DNA of 63,654 bases, counting the filler, from Platydemus manokwari (lineage: Eukaryota), in NCBI GenBank assembly GCA_037951405.1. It is 4 parts of 4 records of this genome, joined end to end, with 100 filler letters (N's around TTAATTAATTAA, not from the genome) between each part and the next. Parts side by side here need not be neighbours in the genome. Positions count along the whole stretch, not along the records: positions 35,288 to 54,658 come from JBBMOY011978044.1; 3 more parts are not named here. One strand, given 5' to 3'. The notes beneath the pieces are model-generated. The model was not told the origin of the DNA, ran no database searches, and saw only the letters and a list, made by a program, of their open reading frames with translations. The position numbers were made by a program, and so were the translations under genes. The first letter of the stretch is position 1. The number at the start of each line of letters is the position of its first letter. This document shows, piece by piece, positions 35,288-54,658 of this stretch.

Positions 35288-35439
35288 ATTGAATAAATAA
35301 GAAGTTAAAAAACTAAAACTGCTAATCGAAAACTATTAAAACGAATTTTGAAGTAATTTCGTTCTAATTAAGCTATATTTTTCATGTTTCTTCATTAAAT
35401 GGGGTTCTTATGAGATTATGTGCTTATTTAATTGCTAAT

Positions 35440-35970
35440 GTTCTGCCATAGCAAGGCCCGTATTGCTTTGAAACTTGTATTAAAGTCTTCATTTTTTAGA
35501 ATACTTTGTTGCATTTTTCGTTCGAAACTAGTTTTTCTCTATTTTTCCCAGATAACTCTTTTAAAGTACATAGTTTCTGTGAATAGTCCTATATGAATCT
35601 CATATATACATTCCTATGGAACTTCTTAGATTCTTTGTACATTTCGGTATTTTGAATTGCTTCAATTTTGTTTGGATCTGCCTTCATGCTATCGTCATTT
35701 ATAATGTGTGCGAGAAATTTAAATTCTTTAGTATTATGTTAAATTTTTCTTGGTTTACCCTTAATCTAGCCTTTCCCATTCTCTGGATCACTTTCTAAAT
35801 TGTATAGTGCTCTCATATTGTTTTTGAAAATATTAGTGCGCTCCTTAAGTGTAAATAAATCATTGCACCTTTATCTCTCATAATTTCAAGTATTTTCGTC
35901 AGTAGTTCTTAAAAAGCATCAGATGCTGTCCCAATTACAAATGGCATCCTAATGTAGAATTATTGTCTAA
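35440..35970 (-). mobile_element. Decayed Ty3/gypsy RT fragment
   Basis: FYIRMPFVIGTASDAF*, ARLRVNQEK, FKFLAHIINDDSMKADPNKIEAIQ, PKCTKNLRSSIG. Confidence 0.75.
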
Positions 35971-36427
35971 ACAATCGAGTTGAAGTGAAGCAAAATTATT
36001 CAAAGCGGCGTGACTAATATTAAATGTATCAGTTTTTAATATTCAAAAATTAAGGGGGATACATCAAACCGCTCTAGCGAAGTTCATCTAGATAAATAAT
36101 ACCGTCAATATTTAAATATCAAAAATCTATAAAAACCAATTAGGTATCACCTAGCTTGGTACAATTGTGAAGAGTAAAATATTTTCGAGATTTAAGCTAA
36201 TAATAAATTAAATATTGCAACTCATTGACTTTTCCAAAAAAACTATTTAAGCAAATTTTAAATTAATTACTTGAAGGAAATTGATTGCCATGGTATCTAT
36301 ATAATCACTTTATTTGTGGTTTCACAAGTCTACAACAGTAATCTACTGAAGACACGGGAAATTTATTTTATCATTCAATTATTATAATTAATAATAATAA
36401 TACAATTTAGGATATAATGATAGATAT

Positions 36428-39400
36428 TTACTCATTTAAATCAATCGCATGGTTACGGCTTGAAATTAAATATAAATCATTCATTGCATCTTCTAAAGTA
36501 TAGTCAATTTTGCCCAAAGATCTCTGTTCATTCACCAAATCCTGGATTTCTTTTTCATTAAATACAGGTTTCGTAGGAACAGGTTTGCGCAATTGTTTTC
36601 TTAGCGAATTGTTACATTGAATCCATCTTGAGAGGCAAGATTTTTCATGGATTATTATTGAATGTCGGGTAAATCGTCTACCGCAAACATAACAAACACA
36701 GCCAGGCATCCTTTTGATAGTTCTCGGTTTCAGTTTCGGTCTGAATGTTTCCACTGAATGTTTATCTTTATTGATTTGCTTGCATTCTATTTCATGCTGT
36801 TGACGATTGCCGAGATTGATCCATGTTCGACAAATATTACAACAAAAGTTTGTAAATTTCGGTTCTTTGCTGTCACGACCAAAAATACCATCTGGTGGAA
36901 TTTCAAAATCATCTTTGTGATGAAGTTGAGACTGGTCTGATACCATATGAAATTGTCGTATTGTTATTGGTGAATCACATTTTTTGCTTGAAAAACACCG
37001 GAAATCCGTTTTATAATATCCATATGGTGTTGGTATGCATTCACTTTTTCTCGATGTCCAATCGTGCCATTTGCCTTCTCCATTAAATTTTACAATTGCA
37101 TCTGGCCGGGTATTTTTCTGAACTATTGTTGGTATCATCGATTCATAAGTCGAATCATTAAAGTCATCCAAAGAATTCAATGAAGATTGAGAACGACGTT
37201 CATTTGTCTTACAATCTGCTTTATTGGTTATTTCATTTACAAGTTGATTATAAATTGCTGAGGGAGTTTTTTTCATTATTTTATCAGACGCTGATTTCAA
37301 ATCTTTACCAAGTTTTTTACAATTTTTTGGTAAAGTGAGTTCTGTTTTTCTAAAACTGGTATTGGATAATTTGTACTGGTTTTTATTTTTAGGACAAACA
37401 TAAAGTTGTGTGTGAGACCTTTCTTCATGGTGTGATATTTTGATTGGTACGGACGAACTGAAACATGTATGAGTTTTGTAATCAATGATAGGAATTTTAG
37501 GAAAGCATTCGGTTTGGTCTGATATATCACAGCTTTGAGATGGTGATAAATCGTGTTTAGATAATTCTTCTTCGGGAAATTTTTCTATGCAAATCAAATC
37601 ACAGACATGATCTATCACGAATTCGAATATATCACCGATAACATTATCCATTGCATCCACATGAAATTCTTCGTCTTTTTTTTCTGAGGCTTCTTTATCA
37701 ACTTCTTCTGAGGCTTCTTTATCAGTTTCATCTTTTAAACTTTCTTCTTTAATTGGGCTTTCGATAGTCAAGTTTTCCACTAAATCCTTTCTACTATCAG
37801 ATGATTTTTCATCGACTTTCGGTGATAACTTGTCTGAGATCTTTTCTGTACTTACATCATTTAATTGAAGAGTAGTTTTATTTTCTGATCCTTTTCCTGA
37901 TGATGATTTCGCTTCATCTTTTATTTCTGTCGTTTTCTGACTCGGGCTGGTATCTGATTTCACTTTGTCATCGGTTAATTTGTCAATGGGCTCACTTTGT
38001 TTTGGTTCACTAATTATTTCATGAACAATTGAAATCTTTTCACTTTCCGTAGTTCGTATCAAACTGTCCACTTTGACAATATTGTCATTGTCGGTAGGAT
38101 ATATTATTACTTCTTCAATGATCGACTTAACTTCAGTAGCGATAACGTATTTATTATTTGGGAACATTTGAATAATTTCAGATTCAAGATTTTCCAAATA
38201 CTTATCAGGTACAATAACACTGGAAAATGAACCACTTTTAGATAAGATATTCATATTCCCAGGTAGATTTTCAATAGCATCTTGAACGGAACCTTGAATA
38301 AAAGTCAGAGGTTTATCGATGCCGATATTCTGTGATCCTGGAACAATATCAAATTTATCTTGCACACTAATTCTATGTTTGTCTAGAATTTTTACATCAT
38401 GACTTATTTTTTTCAGTAATTTATCAGTAGCCTCTAATTCAGATATCAATTCAGGTGCTTCTTTGAAAGATGAGAATGTTTGCGATAGTTGATTGATAAA
38501 GTCTTCGGCAACTACATCATTTATCTTTTGATCAGACCAATTTAAAAGTTGTGTATCATGAGGTTTTTGACTAGTGGTTGTTGATGGTGGTCCCGTAATT
38601 CGAATTGATTCGATACTCTCTATTTTCGATGCTCTACTTTTATCTGATATACTTTGTACGTCAACTTGCCGAAAGTCGACTGATTTGATTTCAATTGTTT
38701 CATCGAAATCACGTTTCAGAGAATCTTGTTTGTGCTGTTTTAAACTTGGCCTATCGGAAAGTTTGGCATTGATCTTTATAGACGGTGGACTTTTAACATC
38801 AGATGTTTCAATATTATCAATTATATCTAATTGATTTTTATCCGATATGGTTTGAATATCAGCTACTTGACTTTCTAATGATTTTATAAGACTCGTTTCG
38901 TCATTGAAATGTCTCAAAGAATGTTCACCTTTTCTTGGTGAAATAGTAAGACTTTGTTTATCAGAAAATTTAGGGCTAGATATTATTTGAGATGTTTCTT
39001 TAAGTTTCGGTGATTCAATATTTTCCAATGTTGATAGTTTACTTTCTTCTATACTCCTATCAGCATTTCGATCTTCAGTTGATTTCATTGGGGTTGTATG
39101 CTCATTGAAAGATTTCTCCGATATTCTTGCTAGGTCTTTGGATATTAGCTTTTGTTCTGGTTTCTTTGAATACATAGCTTCTAAATTTTTTAATAAATAT
39201 TGAATAAATTCGTCATTGCTAAGATTGTGAAGCTTTGATAAATCCTTGGAATCTTTCTGCATAACGTTGTTGAATTTTGCAATTCTTTCAATGGATTTAG
39301 TAGACATAGTTGGCATTCCATTACTATCTAACCGTTTGACATCCTTAGTTACCTGATCTATTAATTCATCTGTGATATTCATTTCAGAAAGTCGTATTTT

Positions 39401-42400
39401 TTCAGATAATTCAGTAAAAAATGCTGGTAAGCTGACATTACTAGAACGTTTCGCTAAGGATATGATATATTCTCTATCAGACTTTTGTTGTTTGTCTGAT
39501 GACGAAAAACGTTTGTCTTCTACATGCGATTCACTAAGTTCTGTCGGTTTTAAACTGGAAGTTCTAGATCTTCTACTACTTTGCGGTATAGTTTGAACTT
39601 CAGCAACATTTAAGTCAAGAGGTTTCATCTCACTCACCTTTTCAGACAAACTCATTATCATTTCATCATCATGTTTCTTAATAGATAAATCCAATATATT
39701 GTCTTCATTAACTGGTAAATTGTCATCGATTAAGATTTTGGGAGTTATTGATGTCTTTTCAGTTTTTGTTAAACTCGAGGTTTTGGGGATATCTATTTTT
39801 GATTTTGATGTTTTCGAATGTCGAATGCTTGATAATAAATCCCGAACAAATTGTTCATTCGTAATTGATTCTAGTTTTGAGTCGATATCAACCTTATTGG
39901 CAAATTCGGCAATTCTTTCTAAAACATTATCGGAAAGAGCTGCAATGCCATGCTTTTCTAAAAGTTTAACATCATGAACTAGTTGATCAAGTAGCTCTGG
40001 TGAATAATCTATTTCAATATGACTCAATTTTTTGAACAAGTCTGCAAAGAACATTGCATAATTAATACTTTCCATTTGTTTGGATTTTCTTTTTTCTTCT
40101 TTATCTTGATCAATTGATATGCTAGTTTGATTATCTATTAAAACTGATTTGATTACTGAGGGCACTGTGTGAACGGTTGTCATTGATGGTCCTTCGATTT
40201 CTACGGTCTGTGTGGCATTTATTGACAACAATCGACTATTATAAGGTATGGTTTGTAAACCGGCATTTTTTTCTACTACTGTTTTCAATTGGCTTGTTTC
40301 CTCAGCTACAGGTTTTGGAGTTTCGTTTTCAAATTTAACAATAGAATTATCTGCTATACTTTGAATGGAAGTAATATTCTGACTGTTAGTTGGTAGATCA
40401 TCGTAAATCAATATTTTGTGAGTAATTGATTGGGTTTGTTGCGAAGTTACTGTTCTAGGTTTCGGAATTTCCACGTTTTTTTTTTCCGAAACTTTGTGGA
40501 CTAATTTTGGTGGTATTTCTTCTGATTGACCAGAACTTGGAACAGCACCTGAAACGGTGTGTTGATTCGATAATTTAGAATGTCTTTCAATGATAATCGA
40601 TGACAAATGTCGTGAGAATTGTTGATTAGAGGATACAGAAAGTTTTTCGCCAATATCATCAATACTAGCGAACTTGGCAATTCTTTCCAATGACGAATTG
40701 GAAAGTGCGGAAATACCTTGTCGTTCTAACTTTGCTACATCAATAGCAAGCCGATCTAATATTTCATTAGTGTATTCGAAAGACTTAGAATCCAATTTCT
40801 TTGACAATTCTCCAAAATAAGTTGCATAATTAACGCTTTCGTCCTGTCGAGCAGTAGAAACGATACTTGGCTTTTCAGGAATATTATCTTTTGATATAAA
40901 AGTTTGGTTCATTATTTGAGGAGGTTCGTGAATTTCAACCATTTTTGTAGTACTTACTGTCATCAGTCGACTATCTTGGGGTGTTTTTTGAATATCGATA
41001 AAATATTGATTTGGAGATTCACCTTCTTTACTAAGAAGTTTCTCTTTTGAACCAAGAAAAATCTCCTGGCTTTTACTTTCTTTCATTTTATCCATTAAAT
41101 CAACGAGACCATCATCATTTGTTAAGATTCCTACTGTCACAGTAGTTGTCACTTTCGAAACTGTAGACTGGGTATTAACAACGGCTGAATCCAATTTCTC
41201 AGAGACTTTTTCGTTTGAATCTGTTTCTAAATTTTTCGAAACACTACTACAAAACGAACTGGAATAATATTTTAAACTTTCAGGATTTTCTTCGATTTGG
41301 TCTTTAATGACTGACGATTTTGGTGATGAAGGAATGGGAATTTTTTCAAAATCCATAAGCTTTTCCGATAATTTTTTCGGGCTTTGGTTATCAGCAATAG
41401 AATTTATGTTTAATAAAGTTGGATCATCCAATCCATTTTGATTTACTTTTGGTGAAATTATAGATTGAACCTCATTCTGAATGCTTGATCTGTCAACTAC
41501 GGTTTGAGGCTGTTTCTGTATACTTGATTTTTCTAACACAGTCTCTCTATCTATTGTAGTTAGAGCATCACTAGTAGCCTTATCGTACAACAAGGATTTA
41601 TATTGTCCCTCATTTTGAATTTCTTTGATAGTGTGCATCCTGGTAGTAGATGAATCTCGAATGTCTTTGGTTTCTGATTTGTTCAAGAAAGACAAACTTT
41701 TGTCATCTTTAATAAACATTGGCTTGACAATTGAAGGTGGTAATTTAATTAATAAAGATTCCCTATCTAATTGTGATTCAATTTTAGGTTTGCTTTTCGT
41801 CGATAGTTCTAAAGGCCGGACAATATTCGATATTCCTGCATGGGCATATTCTTCATGATCAATAATATGGTAAGTGTCTTCAGGTATTTTATAGTGCATG
41901 AGATATTGCTTATCCACAGGTTGATATTGCACCTCATCAAACGCAATAGTATCAAGAATATTTGTTAATTTAGTCGACTCTTCATCTTTGAGAGAAAATG
42001 ATTTACGAATTTGTTGTGATGAATCCATCCGTTGTTTGACGTCTAATAAGGAACTCATCATAACGTCTCTATCCTTGTCTTGTTGACTTTGCATCTGGAA
42101 GATACGAGATGCTATATTAATCAAAAATTTTTGATTTTCAGATGTCGAATCACGAATTCGATCTTTCCAATCTCGATAGGCAATACTGGCTTCTTCTAAA
42201 TATTTATCGAGTGATAGTAAAGTTTTTTCAGATATTTTATCCTTAACATCAATTTTTTCAATATTCAAAATTATTTCTTTCAAGTTTTTATCATTTATAT
42301 TGAGTTCAGTCAAAACAGACTGATGAAATGATGTTTCACTGGTAGGTAGAGATTTAATGTTTGAAAGAACACTGGACTTTAGAGATCTATCTGATTTTCT

Positions 42401-45019
42401 ACTTATACTAGATAAACCTTTATTGATATATTGTTCATTGTCTATTATTTGATATGTATCTTCTGGTTTTTTATGATGGGATAAGAATTGTTTATCGATA
42501 CTCATGCTATGTGTTTCTTCTTTACGCAACTCCTTGTTAACGCATTCATTAAAATCTCTCTGACCAGATTGGAAATTACGTTGTGATGTTGTATCCTCAG
42601 CAAGACTAATTGAATCGAAAGGTCTTAAATAGGATCCATCATCTCGATGTAATGATGATTGACTATCAATTAGAGATGATTGTTTCGCTCCTCCTGATGA
42701 AATTTCACTTAATTTACGGTAATCTTTATCCATTTCTTTATTTGCAGATTCACGACCTTTCAATACAAGAGTATGATGAACTGGATAATCCGAAGTCCTT
42801 ACATCATCAATGATCATTTTCTCAGAACCAATTTCATGAATACGACTTACTTCAGATAGAAATGGAGTCTCCTTATTAGACATAGTTTCATTTTTAAGTG
42901 ATAATTTTGACCCTGGTTCACCTAGGTTTATTTGATTGGATTTCAAAGAAAATTTATTAGATTCTACTTCATTCATTTGCCATTTGGCATTTTCAATGAA
43001 CTCTCTATCCTGTTTTCCATCAGTGGTTATCACGTTTTTCTTATTACTAATTTCATTATTCTGAGGTATTGATGAAATCTTAGCTGATTTACGGAGTTGA
43101 TATGTGCTATCATCTGTTCTTTCTTTGATCGAATGTTGGGCACTTGTTCGAATTGCAGGATCGTTAGTTGATATATTACCACGTTCACCACCATCTTGAC
43201 CATCATGGATAAAAATCTCATTTCGATCAATATCATCCAGGTGTCTCCTGGAATCAATTCGGTCATCATATTTATCCGTATATTCCGTATATGTTGTGGA
43301 TGGAAGTTCTGAAACAACCAAGCTATCGTGATATTCTCTTAAATTAATCGAAGTAACGTTCGATTCAAGAACCATATCATTGACGACCTTTGTTTGCGTT
43401 TTAGTGGTTTCTATTTCAATTGATGTGCGCCTGAAATTGTTGGTTGGAATTTGAACTCTAAATTTGGTTTTTCCTGTTGTATCTTCTGAGTCATTCACTG
43501 GGATTATTTGTTGTTTTGTCAGCGTTTTTACCGAAGATCGTTCTGGTTGACATTCTGACTTCGATGATTGCTCACACACATTCGAAATTAAATTTTTGTT
43601 TTGTTGACCTTCATTATTTTCTCCATCTGATGATGTGTAAATAGTTCGATTAATCGATAATTCTGTTTTGGTTTGGGATCTATTGCTTTCTGAAACGGTT
43701 GACATAATTTTTATGGAGATATGCTGTGGTGGAGTTCGTGTCAAATTACCGACGGGTAAATTCTCCAAAGTATTTCGAGAATCAAATAGCACATTTTCCC
43801 TACCATAATTATCGGATTGTTTTATCTCGATACTCGGTGCGACAGATGTTTGATCATTAGGATTCTGAATTACGCCTTTCAGTGATTCGATTTGTTCTTC
43901 ATTATATGGAAATATGAGCTCGTTAATAGGTTGATGCGATTGAAAACAATAAGCTGTCTCTCTTATGATATAAACATTCGTGACATTCTTTTCACATTTA
44001 CTGTGTGGATTGGAATAAAGATTTTGAATCAATAATGATTTCATTGGTGCAATTTCTGGAGAAATTTCACTCGAATTGCCAGTTAAAGATCTGAATTTAG
44101 AAGACATATCTGATGGAATACTGTCTTTTTTACTTTCTTTAATATACGATTTGGTTTCTTGACTAGCTTGTTTAATGTCATTCGATTTAATTTTAGAATC
44201 GAAACTATCGTCTTTAGCATTTCTCTTTTCCTTGCTTATTGTATCGCCATACGTCATTTCTGTTGTTGATTCTTCTGTTAAATTTGCTTTTTCATCCAAT
44301 GCCATCTCTTTTTTTGAAAATACTAAATTTCTTTCGTCGTTTACTGATTGATTATATTTTTGAACTGTTTTATCAAGCGTGCTCATATTTTCACCGAGAA
44401 TTTTCAATGCACCTTCATCGTTATCAGTTTTATATCGGATATTGCATGTTATTTCTTTCGTGGGATTGATTTTTCCTGAAATCGATGATGCAGTTCCTTC
44501 CAATTTCATAGCCAAATTGAAATTGAAATTATCCTTGCCGCTTAAGTTGTAACTATATTTTCTATCATCCTCTGAACATAAGGGTCTCATACAAGTTTGA
44601 GAATTAGCATCCGAATTTCCGGAATGTGATGACAATATTAATCGGGTTTGAACTGGAGGCTTAGAAGATGATTTTCTAACCATCGTGCTATCACTATCTT
44701 CGACTTGATTAGAAAAATTGGAATCTTTTTTCATTTTTTTGAATGACATTGATTGACTTTTAAGAGTTTGTTTTGTTGAGTGTAGTGATCCTTTGGCATT
44801 GCTGGCTGAGTTTTCGATCAATGTTGGTATCAAATATGATTTATTATATTGTAAGGTCAGTTTCTGTTTTCTTTTGATATCCGAAATAATATCTCCGTTT
44901 TTCACCTTTATGAAATTGCCAGACTTTATAGTCTCAATTTTCAATGTATTGTTCAGAGTGTTTTCAACGAAGACATTTCTTTTTGGATTTAAAAGGTTGT
45001 TTGTTTCTGATTTCTTCAT
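36428..45019 (-). CDS. Giant intronless S/K/E/D-rich protein (2863 aa from first ATG) with internal repeats and C-terminal ZNF474-like C2HC zinc fingers
   Basis: 8.6 kb without a stop in very AT-rich DNA. The ORF-track start at 45055 is a TTG; the first ATG is at 45019 (MKKSE). C-terminal CNICRTWINLGNRQQHEIEC and CYVCGRRFTRHSIIIHEKSCLSRW...LRKPVPTKP. Confidence 0.88.
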   Translation of the reverse strand: MKKSETNNLLNPKRNVFVENTLNNTLKIETIKSGNFIKVKNGDIISDIKRKQKLTLQYNKSYLIPTLIENSASNAKGSLHSTKQTLKSQSMSFKKMKKDSNFSNQVEDSDSTMVRKSSSKPPVQTRLILSSHSGNSDANSQTCMRPLCSEDDRKYSYNLSGKDNFNFNLAMKLEGTASSISGKINPTKEITCNIRYKTDNDEGALKILGENMSTLDKTVQKYNQSVNDERNLVFSKKEMALDEKANLTEESTTEMTYGDTISKEKRNAKDDSFDSKIKSNDIKQASQETKSYIKESKKDSIPSDMSSKFRSLTGNSSEISPEIAPMKSLLIQNLYSNPHSKCEKNVTNVYIIRETAYCFQSHQPINELIFPYNEEQIESLKGVIQNPNDQTSVAPSIEIKQSDNYGRENVLFDSRNTLENLPVGNLTRTPPQHISIKIMSTVSESNRSQTKTELSINRTIYTSSDGENNEGQQNKNLISNVCEQSSKSECQPERSSVKTLTKQQIIPVNDSEDTTGKTKFRVQIPTNNFRRTSIEIETTKTQTKVVNDMVLESNVTSINLREYHDSLVVSELPSTTYTEYTDKYDDRIDSRRHLDDIDRNEIFIHDGQDGGERGNISTNDPAIRTSAQHSIKERTDDSTYQLRKSAKISSIPQNNEISNKKNVITTDGKQDREFIENAKWQMNEVESNKFSLKSNQINLGEPGSKLSLKNETMSNKETPFLSEVSRIHEIGSEKMIIDDVRTSDYPVHHTLVLKGRESANKEMDKDYRKLSEISSGGAKQSSLIDSQSSLHRDDGSYLRPFDSISLAEDTTSQRNFQSGQRDFNECVNKELRKEETHSMSIDKQFLSHHKKPEDTYQIIDNEQYINKGLSSISRKSDRSLKSSVLSNIKSLPTSETSFHQSVLTELNINDKNLKEIILNIEKIDVKDKISEKTLLSLDKYLEEASIAYRDWKDRIRDSTSENQKFLINIASRIFQMQSQQDKDRDVMMSSLLDVKQRMDSSQQIRKSFSLKDEESTKLTNILDTIAFDEVQYQPVDKQYLMHYKIPEDTYHIIDHEEYAHAGISNIVRPLELSTKSKPKIESQLDRESLLIKLPPSIVKPMFIKDDKSLSFLNKSETKDIRDSSTTRMHTIKEIQNEGQYKSLLYDKATSDALTTIDRETVLEKSSIQKQPQTVVDRSSIQNEVQSIISPKVNQNGLDDPTLLNINSIADNQSPKKLSEKLMDFEKIPIPSSPKSSVIKDQIEENPESLKYYSSSFCSSVSKNLETDSNEKVSEKLDSAVVNTQSTVSKVTTTVTVGILTNDDGLVDLMDKMKESKSQEIFLGSKEKLLSKEGESPNQYFIDIQKTPQDSRLMTVSTTKMVEIHEPPQIMNQTFISKDNIPEKPSIVSTARQDESVNYATYFGELSKKLDSKSFEYTNEILDRLAIDVAKLERQGISALSNSSLERIAKFASIDDIGEKLSVSSNQQFSRHLSSIIIERHSKLSNQHTVSGAVPSSGQSEEIPPKLVHKVSEKKNVEIPKPRTVTSQQTQSITHKILIYDDLPTNSQNITSIQSIADNSIVKFENETPKPVAEETSQLKTVVEKNAGLQTIPYNSRLLSINATQTVEIEGPSMTTVHTVPSVIKSVLIDNQTSISIDQDKEEKRKSKQMESINYAMFFADLFKKLSHIEIDYSPELLDQLVHDVKLLEKHGIAALSDNVLERIAEFANKVDIDSKLESITNEQFVRDLLSSIRHSKTSKSKIDIPKTSSLTKTEKTSITPKILIDDNLPVNEDNILDLSIKKHDDEMIMSLSEKVSEMKPLDLNVAEVQTIPQSSRRSRTSSLKPTELSESHVEDKRFSSSDKQQKSDREYIISLAKRSSNVSLPAFFTELSEKIRLSEMNITDELIDQVTKDVKRLDSNGMPTMSTKSIERIAKFNNVMQKDSKDLSKLHNLSNDEFIQYLLKNLEAMYSKKPEQKLISKDLARISEKSFNEHTTPMKSTEDRNADRSIEESKLSTLENIESPKLKETSQIISSPKFSDKQSLTISPRKGEHSLRHFNDETSLIKSLESQVADIQTISDKNQLDIIDNIETSDVKSPPSIKINAKLSDRPSLKQHKQDSLKRDFDETIEIKSVDFRQVDVQSISDKSRASKIESIESIRITGPPSTTTSQKPHDTQLLNWSDQKINDVVAEDFINQLSQTFSSFKEAPELISELEATDKLLKKISHDVKILDKHRISVQDKFDIVPGSQNIGIDKPLTFIQGSVQDAIENLPGNMNILSKSGSFSSVIVPDKYLENLESEIIQMFPNNKYVIATEVKSIIEEVIIYPTDNDNIVKVDSLIRTTESEKISIVHEIISEPKQSEPIDKLTDDKVKSDTSPSQKTTEIKDEAKSSSGKGSENKTTLQLNDVSTEKISDKLSPKVDEKSSDSRKDLVENLTIESPIKEESLKDETDKEASEEVDKEASEKKDEEFHVDAMDNVIGDIFEFVIDHVCDLICIEKFPEEELSKHDLSPSQSCDISDQTECFPKIPIIDYKTHTCFSSSVPIKISHHEERSHTQLYVCPKNKNQYKLSNTSFRKTELTLPKNCKKLGKDLKSASDKIMKKTPSAIYNQLVNEITNKADCKTNERRSQSSLNSLDDFNDSTYESMIPTIVQKNTRPDAIVKFNGEGKWHDWTSRKSECIPTPYGYYKTDFRCFSSKKCDSPITIRQFHMVSDQSQLHHKDDFEIPPDGIFGRDSKEPKFTNFCCNICRTWINLGNRQQHEIECKQINKDKHSVETFRPKLKPRTIKRMPGCVCYVCGRRFTRHSIIIHEKSCLSRWIQCNNSLRKQLRKPVPTKPVFNEKEIQDLVNEQRSLGKIDYTLEDAMNDLYLISSRNHAIDLNE

Positions 45020-45699
45020 CAAGTTCTTGTAAGATAGATAAGTTGTGATATTCAAATTAATGATATGGATTTATTGATATTTTATGTAAAAGATTTTGAT
45101 TTATATTTAGAATTTCTAATAACCTACTATGATATAACTTTATTATATTATCCAGTTTTCTTGGTTGGTTGTTATAGTCTACACTAATTAATAACAGCTT
45201 TTTTATTTTACTTCTAGCTTGTTAAACTAGATAATTAAATTTGGTTAAATAAAATGAAGTATAAATTATTAAAAAAAACAAACCTAATCCATCTTATTAA
45301 GAATGATTTACAACTCATTAGCACTTTACAAGTTGCTTAATCGGTGTATTAATAGATATATTTTGTGTTTATCAGGTTATTTTAAGAAATTTTAATTTAT
45401 TAGAGCTCTATATAATTATTAAAATTCATTTATATTAAAAAGTGAAAGAAAAATTTTGAAATATATTTACAAAAATAATAAAAACTATGATTTTAATCAC
45501 CAAAAAGTTTAATACAACGTCGATTATATGATTAGACAAATGAAGAAGGAAGATGAAACTTCATAATATTAGACACCTCATCTTCGATATTTGAATTTAT
45601 ATTTAGAAAAATGCAGTCTTCATTGGCTGTTGATTTTCTTAATCTTTGAGAATATAGTCTCTAATGGATTTACAAGAGACTTGTATGGGGACAGGCTGG

Positions 45700-45870
45700 T
45701 TGACTATTGGATCTAATTTGATACAAACCTCGTCATTTAAATCTTGATTCGATGATTTTTTACCATTTGATAATAGGTTGAATCACTACTTTTGACATCA
45801 AGTATCAGTTGATATTTGAGGCCATAAAGGTTGGTAGTTCGTGAAAAAAGCCTTCAGAATATTTTATCAA
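45700..45870 (-). mobile_element. Possible small gypsy RNase H remnant
   Basis: Degenerate sequence resembling the TDH.PL.WL...I....GK.N..AD region; frameshifted. Confidence 0.25.
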
Positions 45871-47221
45871 TTTTTTTTGTACGGAAGCATAAATTTACTG
45901 AATACAATTTATACATCCAACCACGAGCCTTAAAATTAACAATATTTACTTGGATTATTATAGAAAATTGCGAAAACCAAAATGCGCTAATGGTTTAAGA
46001 GATCCAAAGAAATCTTACAATTAAATTTAAAGACAGATTTTTAAAAGGTTTCAACAGATAAGAAAAAATACTATGCAATATACATTATAAAAGGAGTCGA
46101 TTCTCTTTTTCATTATCGTGGTGTGAATTCACCGTGTGATCAGGTAGTGATTATTTGATTGACTTTTATTTTGTTGTGGTGTTATTCGCTAATCAATTTC
46201 CCGTTTTAGCTTTGTGGCGAAAATATGATGGAGCGTGGTTTCAAAATACTACTTTGAACAATTATATCTATATCATTTATTTTGTTATTAATAATCGTAA
46301 AACCAGTAAGAAATTTGAAATCATTGATATACTGCAATCAATCTCAAATACCTGACAAAATTTTCAAATATCATGAGTAGAAATGAATGAATTTTGATCC
46401 GTATTAATTAAAATTTCATCAGCTATATCATTTTTGAATCTATGTACTTAACTTCATAAGAATTGCTGATATTTTAAAATGATATTTAAAAATTTAAGTT
46501 TCGTGATTTCTCAACTATTTTTTTACCTGAATAATACATCCCTTACAGTTTCCTTTTTAATTCCGAGTTGTCTTTCACGAAACAAAAAATGATCAAGTTT
46601 CAACTGAATTTAAAATCTGATATTAGAAAGTCAGGGTAGCGATAAATTATAATACATATAGAATTTACAACATAAATGAAAATATGTTTAATTCGCAAGT
46701 TATAATTTTAAAATATTGTATAAAAGTAATTTTAGATACAAAAGTGGTAGATAAGATCCTTCAGAAAACAGTGACAAGTGTCTCGATTAACAAATGAATG
46801 ATCTCCTTAATAAAAGACAGTAGTAAGATTTATGAGATTAAGAAACTTACTAGATTTTAATTAATGACAGGATGACATTTAATTACGATAAAAAAATTAA
46901 ATGTGTGGTGCATATCGATCATTTAACATGGTATAAATAAAATGTTATGATGATTATTGGGATGAAATTTATTGACAAATATTTGAAATGATAAGATATT
47001 TTTTAATTGATTATTACTGAAATTTGTTTCTTGAAAACATTATAAATAATAATGCGAAAAAAAATTGATTAATACATGGGTCAGTTGAAATCTTAATGTA
47101 AATATTCAGGTGGAAAATCAAATATAGGATTGGAACGAAAGTCTTGTTCGATAGAAAATAATATTTGTTTAACCAATAAAGAAAATATGTAAAATGGAAA
47201 TATAAATAAAACATCAATCAT

Positions 47222-47445
47222 CTGTATATCTATACCTTTAAGGTCCATACACTTTTGCCAGCGTCTAGAAGTTGTTTTATGGCGTTTTCATAGGTTTTAA
47301 AGAGAACCACTTTTCCAAATCATCGTTAACCTCTTCAGCGGAGTTATATGTTTTCCCACGAAGTGAGTTTTTCATAGGAGAAAACAGGTAGGAGTCTGAA
47401 TGGACAAGGCCTGGAGAGAATGGTGGGTGCGGTATTACCGTAAAT
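47222..47445 (-). mobile_element. Mariner transposase C-terminal fragment
   Basis: VIPHPPFSPGLVHSDSYLFSPMKNSLRGKTYNSAEEV...WQKCMDLKG matches mariner HPPYSPDLAPSDY.LF and RW.KC...G motifs. Confidence 0.88.
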
Positions 47446-48002
47446 GATAACAATCTGAAACAATTACTTAATTATAAGATAGAAATTAAACAATTAAAAA
47501 AGGATTTAATAAATCATTTAAACTAAACATTGAAATTTTTTAGATTTACATACGATTGATGTTTTGTTTATATTTCCAATTTACATATTGTCTTTGTTGG
47601 TTAAATAAATCTTATTTTGTATTTATATTGTCCACGTCATTAGATTGCATGTATGTTTATTTTGTGATGCATGTTACTAATTTTTGAATATTTGTAAGTT
47701 CTCATTATAATTTTGTTATATAAGATGTCCAATAACATTGTTTAGCGGAAATAAAATAATAAAATCTGAGAAGACAGTTTTTTTTTTCTATTATTAGACT
47801 ACTGATTTGTCTGTTTTATCAACGCACAGTTAACCTATGATGTCAGCTTATTGGTTTCCACAGTATCAATGATTTAAAAATTTAATTTATATTTTCTTTT
47901 ATTCATTTGAAGAAATATTCAAACAGTCATTGGATTCAAATTTTTAACATATATTTTAGAATCAGAACTTCAAGCGTCAATTTTTTTCAAACTAATTGGC
48001 GG

Positions 48003-51000
48003 TCAATTTTTTTTCATATGCTTCATTTTTTGGTAGTCTATAAATGTATTTAATTCTCTCGTTTCTTGATCACATTCTTCAACAAATGTATTTTCATCTG
48101 CTTGTTGTAAACAATATGTGGGTTGTTTTTTCATTATCGTTCGACTTTTACTATAATTAACTTTGACAGTTTTAACAACATTGTCATTTATACTTTGGGA
48201 CTTTGAAATTTGAATTGATATATTCGATGTTCCAGCAATTGGATTTTGTAAACTCGCATTCACAGAAATCTCACTCTTTAAACTCGATCCTTCAATTTTA
48301 GATGACATTGTCTTGATTGTTGAATTACTCAAAGCCTCGGCGACTTTATTAGGTGTTATATTACTCCCAATATTGGCTGGTCTAGTGAAAATACGACTGG
48401 TCTTGACAGAAATTTCCTTTCTTGATACAGGAATATTATTTTTCATAATGTCATGTTTCACAGTGATATTAGAATATGATCGTAGCTGTTGCTGTTTACC
48501 CGATTCGTCATTGATAACTTCTTGAGCTTTTGTTTCACTAAAATAATCGGTTTTTGTTTCTTCGGGAGTCGTTGAGACTTGTGCAGCCTTTCTGACAACA
48601 ATATCTGAGTTAACGACGTTAGGTAAAATTTTGATGTTGTGCTTAACAGGCGGAATCTGCTTATTGAAAATATTTTTCTCCTCGATTTTGTTTTTCGGTA
48701 CCAGAGATCTCGGAAGAGATTCACGGTTACGTCTTTCGGATATCTTGTAATTTGGTCTATGCTTCTCATTTAACGGTGCTGAATATAAACGAGTAAGTTT
48801 TGGAATTATCTTGTTTTCCGAAATCGGTGTGACGGCTTTAGAACGTTTTTTCTTAACAGTGTTATCAGAAAATGATTTGATGATCTTTCCTGTTAATGAT
48901 TTTGCAGGTGTCAAACTTTTTGGAATTAAAATCTTTGTTTTAGAATAATCATTTGATTTGATATTTGTTTTTTCTGATTTTGCTTTGATAAGATTGTTAT
49001 CAACAGTAGGATTGATATTTGGCTGAATCTTTAGATTCAATTTATTCTGCGAAAGTGGTTTTTCAGCAGTTTTATTTTCTTTAGTTTTAGATAACATGAT
49101 TTCTTTTTCAGCTTCACTGTTAATTATATTTTCAAGACTCGTATCTTTCAAATTATTAGGTTCTGCACTTGATGTAATAAGGTTCGAAGGTAGAACTTTG
49201 GTGTCTGGTAATTCCTTAGATTTTGTTTCCATAATTTCTGGTTTGACTTCATCGACAACCGGTTCATCATTTAAAATTTCCTTTAAATATAACAAGTCCT
49301 TTGTAACGGTTTGATTGATTAAATTCCAATTTTCGTTAGCCTTATCATAAAATTCGGTACCAGTTTTTCCTTGTAATGGTGACGCATTTCCCATTAATGA
49401 TTTTACAACAAGTTGAGGCTTCTGTTTTTCATCTAAATTTTCTTTGATACTTTTTTGAATCTTTTCAAATGATTTTGAATCTTTTGAAATATCTTTCTCA
49501 TCTTTCGATTCAACCATTTCTTTGCCATCAATCAAATCAGTGATTTCCTGATCTCTATCATCTTTGAATTGTTGAATTTTATCTTCGTCAATGAATTTTT
49601 CTTTTATAGATTCAATATGTTGACTTTCTTGATTTTCGTCTTTTTTAGTCGGGATCAATATTTGACTAATTTTTATCAATGGTGATGTTTCAATTTCTGA
49701 CTCCATATTTTCTTTTGGAGTGACGTTGATTTCATCATTGTTTTCGTAATGTTCTTCGCTCACTTTTTCAGTTTCTTCTGGTAACAACTTTTCATCGATG
49801 GGTGAAGGTTCAATTAGCGACTCTTTTTGAATTATTTGATCTTCGATATCAGTTGCTAAATTTTTCCCTAAGGAAATAGACTTTATGCTTTCTGGTTCAT
49901 TGGAAATAGACTTCCTTATGCTTTGACCAGCATGATACTGAAGTCTTTTTTCTGAATCTGTGTTAACCTTACCATTATCTTCATCATCAATTAATTTTTC
50001 CTTGTCCGATATCAATGTTTCTTTATTGGATTCTTTTGTTTGAATAATTATGGAATCTTCTTTGAGCTCAATTACTTTGTTGGTTGAATTGTCAACCAAT
50101 CTGCTTTCAGAAATTTCTGGTATTTGTGATTCTCTTTGTGTTTGAATTGAAATCTCTTCAAAAGGTTTTAAATCACCCTCGTCAACACTTTTTATAATAC
50201 CAACCGATTCATCTAATTCCTTACCATCTTCTTTTAAACTATTATGTAAGTCATCTTGTATCAGATGAAGTGGTAAAGCTTGTAAGGTTTTACTATCTCT
50301 AATAATTTCAGATTCAATGATTGATTTGGTGATTTTACTCTTATCAAGTTCTATTTGGTCTTTCAATTCTTTGTTAGCAGCATCATCAAAAAATGGAAAT
50401 TGAATTGCTTGATCAGAAGACATTTTATCAAGTTTCGGAACAGATTTTCTCTCATCTATGGGTTCGTCATCGAAATTAAAATACAATCTTAAGCATTCTT
50501 CAATGAAATTAAATTCAGGGATATCGGATGTTTGAGAATGTCGTTCTGTGGTATTGGGGAGATAATCTTTATTTTCTGTGAAAGATATTTTATCATTTAA
50601 AGGATCAGTTTTTTGTTCATAAATTGGTCCGCTGCCATTTACTTGTAAAACAGGTATGGATGATGATTTTTCCAAGATAATTATCGGTTCAGTTTCAATC
50701 TGAACATCCTTTTTAACAGAAGACTGAGAATTTCCATTTAACGATGTTCTATTTTTTCTTGATAATGTTTTAACGGAATCTCGGCTTTTTTGAGTTGGTA
50801 GATGAACTTCAGAGTGTGACGATTTTTCGACGGATTTCTTTACTAAATTGGATTCTTTCGGAAATTCTTTTTTTAATTGAATTGAAGATTCTTTTGATTG
50901 TTTCGAAGACATAAAACTTGTTGATGGCTTCTGATCAGTTATTTTCTTATTCTTTGATGTTAAGCTTCCTGATAAGGAGTTGGTTTTTCCTTTTGAAGGG

Positions 51001-54000
51001 CCAAGCAGGGAACTTTTAGTTAGAGTAATTTCATCGGATTTAGAAATAACTTCATCAATTTCTGTTAACGTCGTACTATTCAATCCAGATTTTCCTTTAT
51101 TTGTTGAGTTTTGAATGCTGTTATCAATATTTATTTTATCAACTTCAGACAATTGCTGATCTGTAGTGAATTTCTCAATTAATTTCTGATCAGAAACAGT
51201 TTGTGATTCAAAATGGGTTTTATTTTCAATGATTACGTTAGAGTCCGTACTTATTTCTTTGATATCTTCATTTTTAATAGGTTTATTCACATAAGATTGT
51301 AATTCCTCATTACTATATGTCATCTCAGATTTATTAGCATTCTTTTCTTCTAGTTCTTTAATTTTGTCCTGTGATTGTTGAGTTTTAATCAATTCTCGAT
51401 TGGATTCTAAACTTTTCTCGAGACTATTTTTGTCCATGGATTTTTCTGATTTTTTATCTTGAACCACTTGAGTACTTTCTGATATTATTTTGTTATTAAC
51501 TTTTGATTTATTACTAGAATGGCTTGTTATTGTTGCTAGGTGATTATCCGAGTAAGTGTGCTCAGTTTCTTTTGATAGGGATAATTGGTTTGATTGTGGT
51601 TTCTCCTTATCAGTTGTGGAATACGATATTTTTTTGTCCGAAGAATTCCTTTTTAATTTTTCTGATTGCATTCCAATAAAATCTTCTTTATAATTATTAA
51701 GCTCTTCGTTTGGAGAAATTTTTAATTCACTTGATTGAGTTGATGTATTCTTCGTAGTGATCAAGTTATGCATATCATTTCTATTATCTCTAGAGGCCTC
51801 GTCAACTGAAGTAAGGCTTTTGACAATATTATCGTTACTATCATAGTTGGATGCTTCTTCAACTGATACAGACTGATTAACAATATAATCCGGTATATCA
51901 TTTTTGTCATAATTGGATCCTTTTTCAACTGATACAGTCTTATTGACAATAAAATCAGCTATGTCATTTTTGTCATAATTTGATCCTTCTTCAACTGATA
52001 CAGGCTCATTAACAATATAATCCGGTATATCATTTTTGTCGTAACTGGATCCTTTTTCAACTGATACAGTCTTCTTTACAATATTATCAGGTATATCATT
52101 TTTGTCGTAACTGGATCCCTTTTCAACTGATACAGTCTTCTTGACAATATCATCAGCTATGTCATTTTTATCGTAATTTGATCCTTCCTCAACTGATACA
52201 GGCTTCTTGACAATAAAATCAGCTATGTCATTTTTGTCGTAATTTGATCCTTCTTCAACTGATACAGGCTCATTAACACTATAATCCGGTATATCATTTT
52301 TATCATAACTGGATCCTTCTTCAACTGATACGGGCTCTTTGACATTATAATCAGGTATACTATTTTTGTCATAACTGGATCCTTCTTCAACTGATACCGG
52401 CTTCGCATCAATATCATAAAATAATTTATCATTTTCAACAAAACGTGCGTGTTTTACTTTATTATTAAATTTTTCAGGAACAATTTTAGAAATGGATGAT
52501 TTATTTTGCTGTTCAGAAATGTCGGGTATTTGTGTGTTGCTTTCCGAAATCGACAGTGAACTTTGTGAGTGTTTGGAAAGTAGTCCAGTAGCGGATACTA
52601 AATTCATTGCTTTCAAGTTATCATCTTCGATTAACGATAAGTTGTTGGAAACTAATTTAGATAATAACGGTGATGATGCACTGTTTTGATTTAATATCTT
52701 TTGTTCATTGACGGCATCGATTTTTTGAGTCTTTTTCGGTGGAGTCAAACCAATTTTATCTAACTGTTTCGAGTCTTGACTTATAAAGTAATGGTTCATA
52801 ATTTCTTCTTTATCGGCATCAGTTAATGAGTTAAACAAAGTCGTCAGTTGAAAATGTTTTGGAAAATCATTCAAAGTTGATGTTGGAAGTTGACTAGGAA
52901 CTTCGGTGTTTGTATCGTTTGATTTAGAAGTTATGGAAAAGGGTTTTTTGTTAATTTTTGATGACGACAAGCGTTCAGTGGGAGAATAACGGGATTCGGT
53001 TACTTGTTTCAGAGAATATAGTTTGGATAAATTAGGATTATCTTGGTCTTCTATGTTTTCATTCAATTCCTCAAATTCATTACTTTCTATTTGCTCATTT
53101 TCTGTTTCATCTCGAATATTCAAATGCTCTTTTTGTTTGATTTCAATAATATATACAAATATAGGAGATCTGTTCAAGTTTCTGTTGATACATTGCAGAT
53201 TATTTTGACAACAAGGATTCATACATAAGCGGTTTCTGTCAACGCAATTCATCAGTACCGAACTCGAATCGCTTTCAAGATCACTTTGATACCTTCTTAT
53301 AGTGATGGTAGTGACAGTCGATCCGTCGACTGAGCTGTTAATTACAGGCCGTTGTGCCACTTTGTATAAAGAGACTTTGGAATCATGAATTGATTTTATA
53401 CTTTTAGTATCACTTGTATCAATTGGTCTCGAAATCACCTTAATTATTGGTATCCCATCCTTCAATTTTTCTAAATATTTTTTAAAATTACTCTTTTTAT
53501 CATTATTTTTACAGGCATTAGTATATTCTACTAATTGTCGACTAACTGTTTCCATTGTTTTGCACAATTTTTTGATGTTCTCGCAAAGAGCATATTTCGA
53601 ATTGGAATCGTTGCTTTCCTCTTCATCAGATGAACATGAATCATTATCTAATATTTCCAAATTCGAATTCAATTTTGATAATCCTGGTAGTGATTCCAAA
53701 TCTGTTAATTTTAAATCAATATTAAGATTAGAATTCTCATTTCGATTCAGATTTAAATTGGTTGATTTGTTCATGTCTATCTCCGAACGAGCTAAATCTG
53801 ATGTTTGCATTATGTTTATTATAGGTGGGTTTAGTGATGAGGTGAAGTTGTTATTATATTTATCCGATAAATTCATTTGAATAATATTAGCAACTTCTGG
53901 ACAGCATTTGTTTTGTGAGAATAAATTGTCTTTTTTTCTTGATAAAGTTTTACAGAATTTATGCTGTAATGAATGCACTTTGAGATATTGACTAGATGGA

Positions 54001-54167
54001 TCGGTCATTGATGCAAATGGATTGTAATCTAATGAGAGAGCCGGTTTGTTGTGGTGTTCATAACACTTGATTCGATGAAACGTTGGGATTTTTTTCTTGA
54101 AGATTCTCTGTAGAAAATTTTCTTCCAATATTTTGGGATGCTTTAAATGCGTTTTAGACTTTTTCAT
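48003..54167 (-). CDS. Giant intronless low-complexity protein (2054 aa), unknown function, with a 22-aa tandem repeat
   Basis: 6.2 kb ATG-to-stop open frame. Acidic middle region, basic K/P/S-rich C-terminal region; no domain I recognise. Confidence 0.85.
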   Translation of the reverse strand: MKKSKTHLKHPKILEENFLQRIFKKKIPTFHRIKCYEHHNKPALSLDYNPFASMTDPSSQYLKVHSLQHKFCKTLSRKKDNLFSQNKCCPEVANIIQMNLSDKYNNNFTSSLNPPIINIMQTSDLARSEIDMNKSTNLNLNRNENSNLNIDLKLTDLESLPGLSKLNSNLEILDNDSCSSDEEESNDSNSKYALCENIKKLCKTMETVSRQLVEYTNACKNNDKKSNFKKYLEKLKDGIPIIKVISRPIDTSDTKSIKSIHDSKVSLYKVAQRPVINSSVDGSTVTTITIRRYQSDLESDSSSVLMNCVDRNRLCMNPCCQNNLQCINRNLNRSPIFVYIIEIKQKEHLNIRDETENEQIESNEFEELNENIEDQDNPNLSKLYSLKQVTESRYSPTERLSSSKINKKPFSITSKSNDTNTEVPSQLPTSTLNDFPKHFQLTTLFNSLTDADKEEIMNHYFISQDSKQLDKIGLTPPKKTQKIDAVNEQKILNQNSASSPLLSKLVSNNLSLIEDDNLKAMNLVSATGLLSKHSQSSLSISESNTQIPDISEQQNKSSISKIVPEKFNNKVKHARFVENDKLFYDIDAKPVSVEEGSSYDKNSIPDYNVKEPVSVEEGSSYDKNDIPDYSVNEPVSVEEGSNYDKNDIADFIVKKPVSVEEGSNYDKNDIADDIVKKTVSVEKGSSYDKNDIPDNIVKKTVSVEKGSSYDKNDIPDYIVNEPVSVEEGSNYDKNDIADFIVNKTVSVEKGSNYDKNDIPDYIVNQSVSVEEASNYDSNDNIVKSLTSVDEASRDNRNDMHNLITTKNTSTQSSELKISPNEELNNYKEDFIGMQSEKLKRNSSDKKISYSTTDKEKPQSNQLSLSKETEHTYSDNHLATITSHSSNKSKVNNKIISESTQVVQDKKSEKSMDKNSLEKSLESNRELIKTQQSQDKIKELEEKNANKSEMTYSNEELQSYVNKPIKNEDIKEISTDSNVIIENKTHFESQTVSDQKLIEKFTTDQQLSEVDKINIDNSIQNSTNKGKSGLNSTTLTEIDEVISKSDEITLTKSSLLGPSKGKTNSLSGSLTSKNKKITDQKPSTSFMSSKQSKESSIQLKKEFPKESNLVKKSVEKSSHSEVHLPTQKSRDSVKTLSRKNRTSLNGNSQSSVKKDVQIETEPIIILEKSSSIPVLQVNGSGPIYEQKTDPLNDKISFTENKDYLPNTTERHSQTSDIPEFNFIEECLRLYFNFDDEPIDERKSVPKLDKMSSDQAIQFPFFDDAANKELKDQIELDKSKITKSIIESEIIRDSKTLQALPLHLIQDDLHNSLKEDGKELDESVGIIKSVDEGDLKPFEEISIQTQRESQIPEISESRLVDNSTNKVIELKEDSIIIQTKESNKETLISDKEKLIDDEDNGKVNTDSEKRLQYHAGQSIRKSISNEPESIKSISLGKNLATDIEDQIIQKESLIEPSPIDEKLLPEETEKVSEEHYENNDEINVTPKENMESEIETSPLIKISQILIPTKKDENQESQHIESIKEKFIDEDKIQQFKDDRDQEITDLIDGKEMVESKDEKDISKDSKSFEKIQKSIKENLDEKQKPQLVVKSLMGNASPLQGKTGTEFYDKANENWNLINQTVTKDLLYLKEILNDEPVVDEVKPEIMETKSKELPDTKVLPSNLITSSAEPNNLKDTSLENIINSEAEKEIMLSKTKENKTAEKPLSQNKLNLKIQPNINPTVDNNLIKAKSEKTNIKSNDYSKTKILIPKSLTPAKSLTGKIIKSFSDNTVKKKRSKAVTPISENKIIPKLTRLYSAPLNEKHRPNYKISERRNRESLPRSLVPKNKIEEKNIFNKQIPPVKHNIKILPNVVNSDIVVRKAAQVSTTPEETKTDYFSETKAQEVINDESGKQQQLRSYSNITVKHDIMKNNIPVSRKEISVKTSRIFTRPANIGSNITPNKVAEALSNSTIKTMSSKIEGSSLKSEISVNASLQNPIAGTSNISIQISKSQSINDNVVKTVKVNYSKSRTIMKKQPTYCLQQADENTFVEECDQETRELNTFIDYQKMKHMKKN
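51775..52400 (-). repeat. Coding 66-bp tandem repeat, 8 full and ~2 degenerate units
   Basis: Unit peptide [PT]VSVE[EK]GS[SN]YDKNDI[PA]DxIVxx; tcaactgatac recurs every 66 nt. Confidence 0.95.
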
Positions 54168-54658
54168 AATTATAATTTTGTTTGGAATTTTATATAATCA
54201 TTTATAATTCAATAAAATTGAGAAAAATATTGACTTCATTTATCATTATATCTAGGTTGTTGTTTTTATTCTGAATGTCGTTTTATGTTTATTTTTTCCA
54301 GTCATATGATATATTTAGGTTCGAAAAGTTAACGATTAGCTATTTTATAATATTTTGAAAATTACCCAATAATTATAATTAGCCTTTTGGATTTTTCCGC
54401 AAATATTCTATTAACATTCTACTAAAATTATTCTTATCGCTTTGATGCAGTAATTTTTTATCTTTAATCATAAAACTAATCATAAATTTTAAGATTATTT
54501 AACGAATATGTTTGTGTTTCTGTATATAACTGTTTAGTTATCATTTAAATACGAGAACTTAAAATAAAATTATGTAAATTCAGTAAATTTATTTTTCTCA
54601 CACCTAATGACATAACAAATTAAATTTAACAAAAAACTTCTATCGGCTTATTTTTCTT

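Follow-up and report, generated by a model that had tools for sequence, protein, structure and literature searches.

A probable ZNF474-type giant protein with a conserved N-terminal head beside a second giant open reading frame in Platydemus manokwari

Proteins of the ZNF474 type are small and linked to the cilium, and little is understood of them. The phylogenetic profile of ZNF474 is confined to ciliated organisms, and its localisation to cilia has been shown (PMC11317154). Here, a locus of Platydemus manokwari (NCBI GenBank assembly GCA_037951405.1) is described in which two giant open reading frames (ORFs), ORF1 and ORF2, lie side by side, and in which ORF1 very probably encodes a giant protein of the ZNF474 type with a conserved N-terminal head. 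The locus occupies positions 35288-54658 (record JBBMOY011978044.1) of a window of 63,654 nucleotides, filler included, that joins four parts of this genome end to end. The original prediction for this DNA took the two ORFs for distant tandem paralogs, members of an undescribed lineage-specific family of giant scaffold proteins having in common an unrecognised targeting head in the first ~370 amino acids (aa). For ORF1, a conserved N-terminal region that matches no Pfam model is indeed found; its sharing with ORF2 is borderline only.

Exactly two ORFs of at least 150 aa are present in the stretch 35288-54658, both on the minus strand, and the other frames hold none. Both are regarded as real coding sequence because frames of such lengths cannot stay open by chance at this content of adenine and thymine (AT) and because no other long frame is present. 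The content of guanine and cytosine (GC) is 0.30-0.34 within the two frames versus 0.25-0.28 in between. ORF1 and ORF2 are two separate, real, single-exon genes, and the part of the original prediction that described two giant intronless ORFs on one strand of one contig, some 3 kb apart, is confirmed by the frames and the spacer listed in Table 1. In a mechanical ORF list the open frame of ORF1 extends over 36428-45055, with its first ATG at 45019. Neither protein is present as an exact sequence in the protein collection searched.

The assignment of ORF1 comes from its C-terminus. Its last ~140 aa hold two fingers of the form C-x2-C-x11-H-x3-C, similar to those of ZNF474 and the ZC2HC1 group, and the second of them shows the extended signature CY-x-CGR-x-F ... 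S-I-x-IHE-x-x-CL-x-x-W ... L-x-K-x-LR-x-P-x-P-x-KP. When the last 1200 aa of ORF1 were scanned with HMMER against 1.84 billion representative proteins, 390 matches were obtained at an expect value (E) <= 1e-3, of which 150 were listed. Among the 150 matches listed, every one checked covers the finger region only, with the exception of P0001, a relative of ORF1 described below; where a match has a name, it is 'zinc finger protein 474-like', and such entries come from amphioxus, starfish and flatworms. These ZNF474-like proteins match ORF1 at E 1e-28 to 1e-10; with phmmer, E values reach 1e-26, those for the amphioxus and starfish proteins being 9e-26 and 7e-24, respectively, and with protein BLAST (BLASTP) the second finger and tail of ORF1 show 57% identity over 44 aa (E 4e-13) to the ZNF474-like protein of the starfish Acanthaster. 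The Pfam family zf-C2HC_2 (PF13913) matches ORF1 at a sub-threshold level, scoring 20.3 bits with full-length ORF1 and 23.0 bits when its last 240 aa alone are used, a match (E 6e-5) that covers one finger only and does not reach the gathering cut-off of 27 bits. A search of protein atlas clusters with the ORF1 tail gave one weak lead, to a generic C2H2 protein (score 0.77), and the only matches of the tail in a PDB sequence search, to ribosomal eL34, were rejected as spurious. Word-based protein searches with the head and tail of ORF1 returned nothing, a result of low sensitivity, since P0001 lay inside the length range searched.

ORF1 differs from ZNF474 itself in scale and build. It has 2863 aa, compared with 89-1183 aa in the 150 matches listed (P0001, with 2905 aa, excepted), and it carries only two fingers, compared with seven in each of the two ZNF474-like proteins that were scanned against Pfam. 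Its fingers are also preceded, unlike those of ZNF474, by about 2700 aa of head, repeated modules and low-complexity linkers. By analogy, because ZNF474 localises to cilia, ORF1 would most likely be a scaffold associated with the cilium or the sperm flagellum. The description of an undescribed family has to be qualified, since the C-terminus of ORF1 falls in the known group of ZNF474-type C2HC fingers. Of the two proteins, then, ORF1 can be assigned to a known group and ORF2 to none.

The sole full-length relative of ORF1 among the matches listed is P0001 (UniParc UPI00060573EF, 2905 aa), which matches the last 1200 aa of ORF1 at E 6e-49 (HMMER). It shares with ORF1, in the same order, a head, DKQYL modules, helical modules and a C-terminal block, at an overall identity of only about 28%. 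The heads align by BLASTP over ORF1 11-224 and P0001 7-215 with 32% identity (E 2e-27), the DKQYL modules at E 9e-15, the helical modules at E 1e-18 to 3e-12, and the C-terminal blocks, ORF1 2429-2594 and P0001 2741-2903, with 45% identity (E 9e-40). Copy numbers differ, P0001 having about six helical and about three DKQYL modules where ORF1 has three and two, respectively. The P0001 model stops (aa 2903-2905) opposite ORF1 aa 2594, whereas ORF1 runs ~270 aa further, to the fingers; possibly the model was cut short, or else the species in question has no such fingers. The matches place ORF1 in a genuine family, one that evolves fast and is very thinly sampled, and show that the conservation of its N-terminal head is real.

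Along its length, ORF1 is a giant, mostly low-complexity protein with conserved islands. The core block of the head follows the pattern Y-x-Y-x-L-x-GKDN-x-N-x-NLAMK ... NP-x-KE ... C-x-IRY-x-TDND ... EN, and the head has no match in Pfam, in a PDB sequence search or in protein atlas clusters; a metagenome scan with the aligned heads of ORF1 and P0001 likewise gave no match. The helical module, NYA-x-FF-x-EL-x-K-x-L ... LERIA-x-F, is recovered within ORF1 by internal BLASTP at E 2e-30 and 4e-13. The helical repeats and zinc fingers that had been described downstream of the head are present, as three modules and two fingers. Neither the helical module nor the DKQYL/PEDTY module matches a Pfam family, and both may be undescribed domains, in which case ORF1 would supply new domains to characterise. 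Outside the fingers, the best-conserved part of ORF1 is the C-terminal block, in which a number of cysteines and the motif PIIDYKT occur and for which there is no Pfam model.

ORF2, in comparison, is a serine-, lysine- and asparagine-rich protein of 2054 aa without a recognisable domain, in which neither a Pfam family nor the C2HC pattern was found. Of the ~370 aa of collinear common head that had been claimed, only a block of ~75 aa (ORF1 153-221, ORF2 133-208) stands out. It was examined with profile tests that use the alignment of the ORF1 and P0001 heads (two sequences) as the query, P0001 having played no part in the original prediction. The HMMER head profile matches the ORF2 head at E 0.0014 with 4.1 bits, a score reached by 8-9 of 2000 composition-preserving shuffles and by none of 96 natural windows; against the whole 2054-aa ORF2 the same profile selects residues 133-208, and 6 of 500 shuffles equal its score. 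When BLOSUM62 is averaged over the ORF1 and P0001 rows, the local score of the resulting profile is 63, versus 30 +/- 4.7 for shuffles (z = 7, reached by 0 of 2000), and maxima in the controls are 33 (159 natural windows), 35 (385 windows from non-coding frames of the stretch 35288-54658) and 38.5 (163 unrelated proteins). With plain pairwise scoring of the first 100-400 residues of ORF1 and ORF2, shuffling gives z = 2.4-5.1, and in a window-pair test each head ranks first against the windows of the other protein. The global profile alignment of the ORF1/P0001 head with the ORF2 head is not significant.

The placement of the block is regular as well. It starts at residue 153 in ORF1, 144 in P0001 and 133 in ORF2, and the top match of the ORF2 block is the head block in both whole ORF1 (score 69, next 62) and whole P0001 (61, next 51). 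Fourteen of 21 identities between ORF1 and ORF2 fall on columns in which ORF1 and P0001 are identical, against an expectation of 10.1 (p 0.036).

The five collinear motif pairs from which the common head had been proposed all lie where they were reported, and they fare unequally. Scored against the ORF1/P0001 profile, the third, a 23-aa stretch (RKYSYNLSGKDNFNFNLAMKLEG versus NKSTNLNLNRNENSNLNIDLKLTD), is clearly above chance at z = 5.4 and carries the signal of the block. The KPP-x-QT stretch that precedes it reaches z = 1.8, the piece next after it z = 1.35, and the last piece, the EN...L helix, z = 1.6; the fourth motif belongs to the same block as the third and is by itself weakly above chance (z = 1.6). 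The first motif, the N-terminal MKKS...PK, is no better than chance against this profile (z = 0.7), and the second, KQKLTLQYN, is unconserved even in P0001. The fifth, LYSNPH...VYIIRE, scores z = -0.6 and was rejected as a second shared block.

Depending on the scoring scheme and the search space, the probability that the block is a product of chance lies between about 1e-4 and 0.35, which is borderline: standard tools, which are stricter, pass the block over, and a more permissive, properly controlled profile test picks it up. That ORF1 and ORF2 arose by an old tandem duplication, with the ~75-aa head block surviving, may be given roughly an even chance. Several observations agree in favouring it: the position of the block, its semi-independent recurrence in P0001, and the layout of the two genes, which is that of tandem paralogues, neighbours on one strand that are each built as a single open frame; in composition, too, they are alike. 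Set against this are results that speak against a duplication or for unrelated neighbours, in which case ORF2 would be a fast-evolving, low-complexity orphan and the block a chance match of asparagine-rich stretches in an AT-rich genome, found by a reader who was seeking similarity; such an origin has a probability not far short of even. BLASTP of whole ORF1 against whole ORF2 places its top match at ORF1 158-220 and ORF2 139-206 with E 0.28. With the heads alone hhalign returns P 0.0055 at a low probability of 6.6%, and with the whole ORF1+P0001 alignment as query it finds the same block at P 0.35 and a probability of 0.2%. The two heads rank only fourth among 247 natural window pairs under plain pairwise scoring, and P0001 alone, compared with the ORF2 head, gives a local z of 2.1-2.4 and a global z of about 1, the latter not significant. 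The signal is confined mainly to one asparagine-rich N-x-N-x-N motif, that of the 23-aa stretch, with flanks at about z = 1.4-1.8 and the first, second and fifth motifs failing, and ORF2 has for the most part other residues in place of the strings that do not vary between ORF1 and P0001 (GKDN, NLAMK, IRY-x-TDND, NP-x-KE). Nor is any further region common to ORF1 and ORF2: shuffles reach the real score in 472 of 500 cases for the mid block, 36 of 500 for the helical module and 43 of 500 for the C-terminal block, and the last two were on these counts rejected as shared elements. AlphaFold2 models of the heads are of low confidence, with a mean predicted local distance difference test score of 40 for ORF1 and 37 for ORF2, and show no clear common fold, their sole common feature being a long helix that begins at the EN motif. 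Relatives of ORF2 in which conservation of the block could be checked were found neither by word-based protein search, nor in the metagenome scan, nor, for the head, in the protein atlas, and BLASTP of ORF2 against P0001 gives no match at E < 1; as far as the search methods used can see, ORF2 appears to be an orphan.

What speaks against a chance resemblance between unrelated neighbours is that the profile score of 63 is unequalled in the natural controls (<= 38.5), that the block keeps its place in all three proteins and is the top match in both ORF1 and P0001, and that the identities of ORF2 are enriched at conserved positions. The claim of distant tandem paralogy thus retains a collinear block of ~75 aa, with borderline statistics and no other matching region. 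Since the frames are on the same strand and only 3 kb apart, they could also be pictured as exons within a single, larger transcription unit, or as a gene to which ORF2 contributes an alternative first exon, with the MKKS starts not both real. This is very improbable: a stop codon ends ORF2, the first methionine of ORF1 (at 45019) aligns with that of P0001, the DNA directly upstream of either ATG is AT-rich and non-coding with no open frame running in, and the remains of a decayed mariner element lie in the spacer.

If an old tandem duplication did give rise to the pair, only the head block of ~75 residues would still be recognisable in ORF1 and ORF2, the remainder having diverged past detection or having been replaced through repeat growth. 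ORF1 itself would most likely be a long, largely disordered scaffold, anchored to the cilium or sperm flagellum by its ZNF474-type finger pair, with the head, the helical modules and the C-terminal block as constrained docking surfaces. ORF2, if a paralogue, would have retained the head block only, while a new acidic repeat of 22 aa grew in it; otherwise it would be an independent, fast-evolving low-complexity gene. It is possible, although somewhat less likely than not, that the two belong to a family of giant and mostly disordered proteins of the cilium or sperm that is restricted to one lineage, is defined by an N-terminal module of ~75 residues absent from databases and was tandem-duplicated here, one copy keeping the ZNF474-type fingers and the other losing all modules except the head and growing the 22-aa repeat, with the head as a common targeting or docking handle.

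A ZNF474-type protein of 2863 aa would suggest that the finger pair can anchor a large scaffold, because ORF1 extends it by an unnamed head that is conserved and by repeated modules of two new kinds. Were the head truly common, the pair would show a giant gene duplicating and then losing nearly all recognisable sequence, and would single out the head as the part on which constraint has persisted. Were it not, the case would be one for caution, in that collinear motifs picked by hand carry little weight when the proteins are rich in asparagine and the genomes rich in AT.

Table 1. Positions of the two ORFs and of the features within and between them, counted along the window
Feature	Positions	Strand	Description or basis
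ORF1	36428..45019	-	single open frame, 2863 aa plus stop codon; ATG at 45019, starts MKKSETNN
ORF1 N-terminal head, aa 1-235	44315..45019	-	conserved with P0001 (BLASTP), no Pfam model
ORF1 head core block, aa 153-221	44357..44563	-	sole ORF1 part resembling ORF2
ORF1 DKQ[FY]L-x-H-x-K-x-PEDTY-x-IID module, ~55 aa, 2 copies (aa 842-900, 1036-1094)	41738..42496	-	high-scoring segment pairs with P0001, 838-977 and 1035-1077
ORF1 helical module, ~110 aa, 3 copies (~aa 1390-1500, 1650-1765, 1860-1965)	39125..40852	-	internal BLASTP
ORF1 cysteine-bearing C-terminal block, aa 2429-2594	37238..37735	-	BLASTP to P0001
ORF1 two ZNF474-type C2HC zinc fingers, aa 2727-2746 and 2776-2795	36635..36841	-	C-x2-C-x11-H-x3-C pattern
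Spacer between ORF1 and ORF2	45020..48002	.	AT-rich, 2983 bases, GC 0.25-0.28
Mariner transposase remnant	47277..47453	-	phmmer match to Mos1 transposase residues 266-317, E 6e-6
ORF2	48003..54167	-	single open frame, 2054 aa plus stop codon; ATG at 54167, starts MKKSKTH
ORF2 block resembling the ORF1/P0001 head core, aa 133-208	53544..53771	-	BLASTP, hhalign, HMMER, averaged profile
ORF2 nine 22-aa units, aa 589-786	51810..52403	-	Tandem Repeats Finder, period 66, 8.5 copies, 86% matches

The mariner remnant in the spacer corresponds to the C-terminal ~50 aa of the transposase, and the frame upstream of it is interrupted by stop codons. An Rfam search gave no match.

Tandem repeats occur behind the head in both P0001 and ORF2. 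P0001 differs from ORF1 in carrying a long tandem repeat of ~30-aa units directly behind its head, where ORF1 is without a repeat; the array lies at aa ~250-650, with units of the form ...KPSIIKTE-x-LTDK-x-SIDEE-x-STIINTEIPLDEQ... The 22-aa repeat of ORF2, unrelated to that array, begins some 380 aa past the ORF2 head block, and the region behind the head seems prone to repeat growth. The presence of this repeat in ORF2, noted in the original prediction, is borne out by the 66-base period in Table 1. Its consensus is [KE]-P-VSVEEGS-x-YDKNDIPDYIV-x, the ninth unit being degenerate, and it appears to be translated, because differences between units are concentrated at third codon positions, where they are twice as frequent. 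Elsewhere in the ORF2 coding sequence, a 20-base tandem duplication is found at 49453-49490 (1.9 copies, 94% matches).

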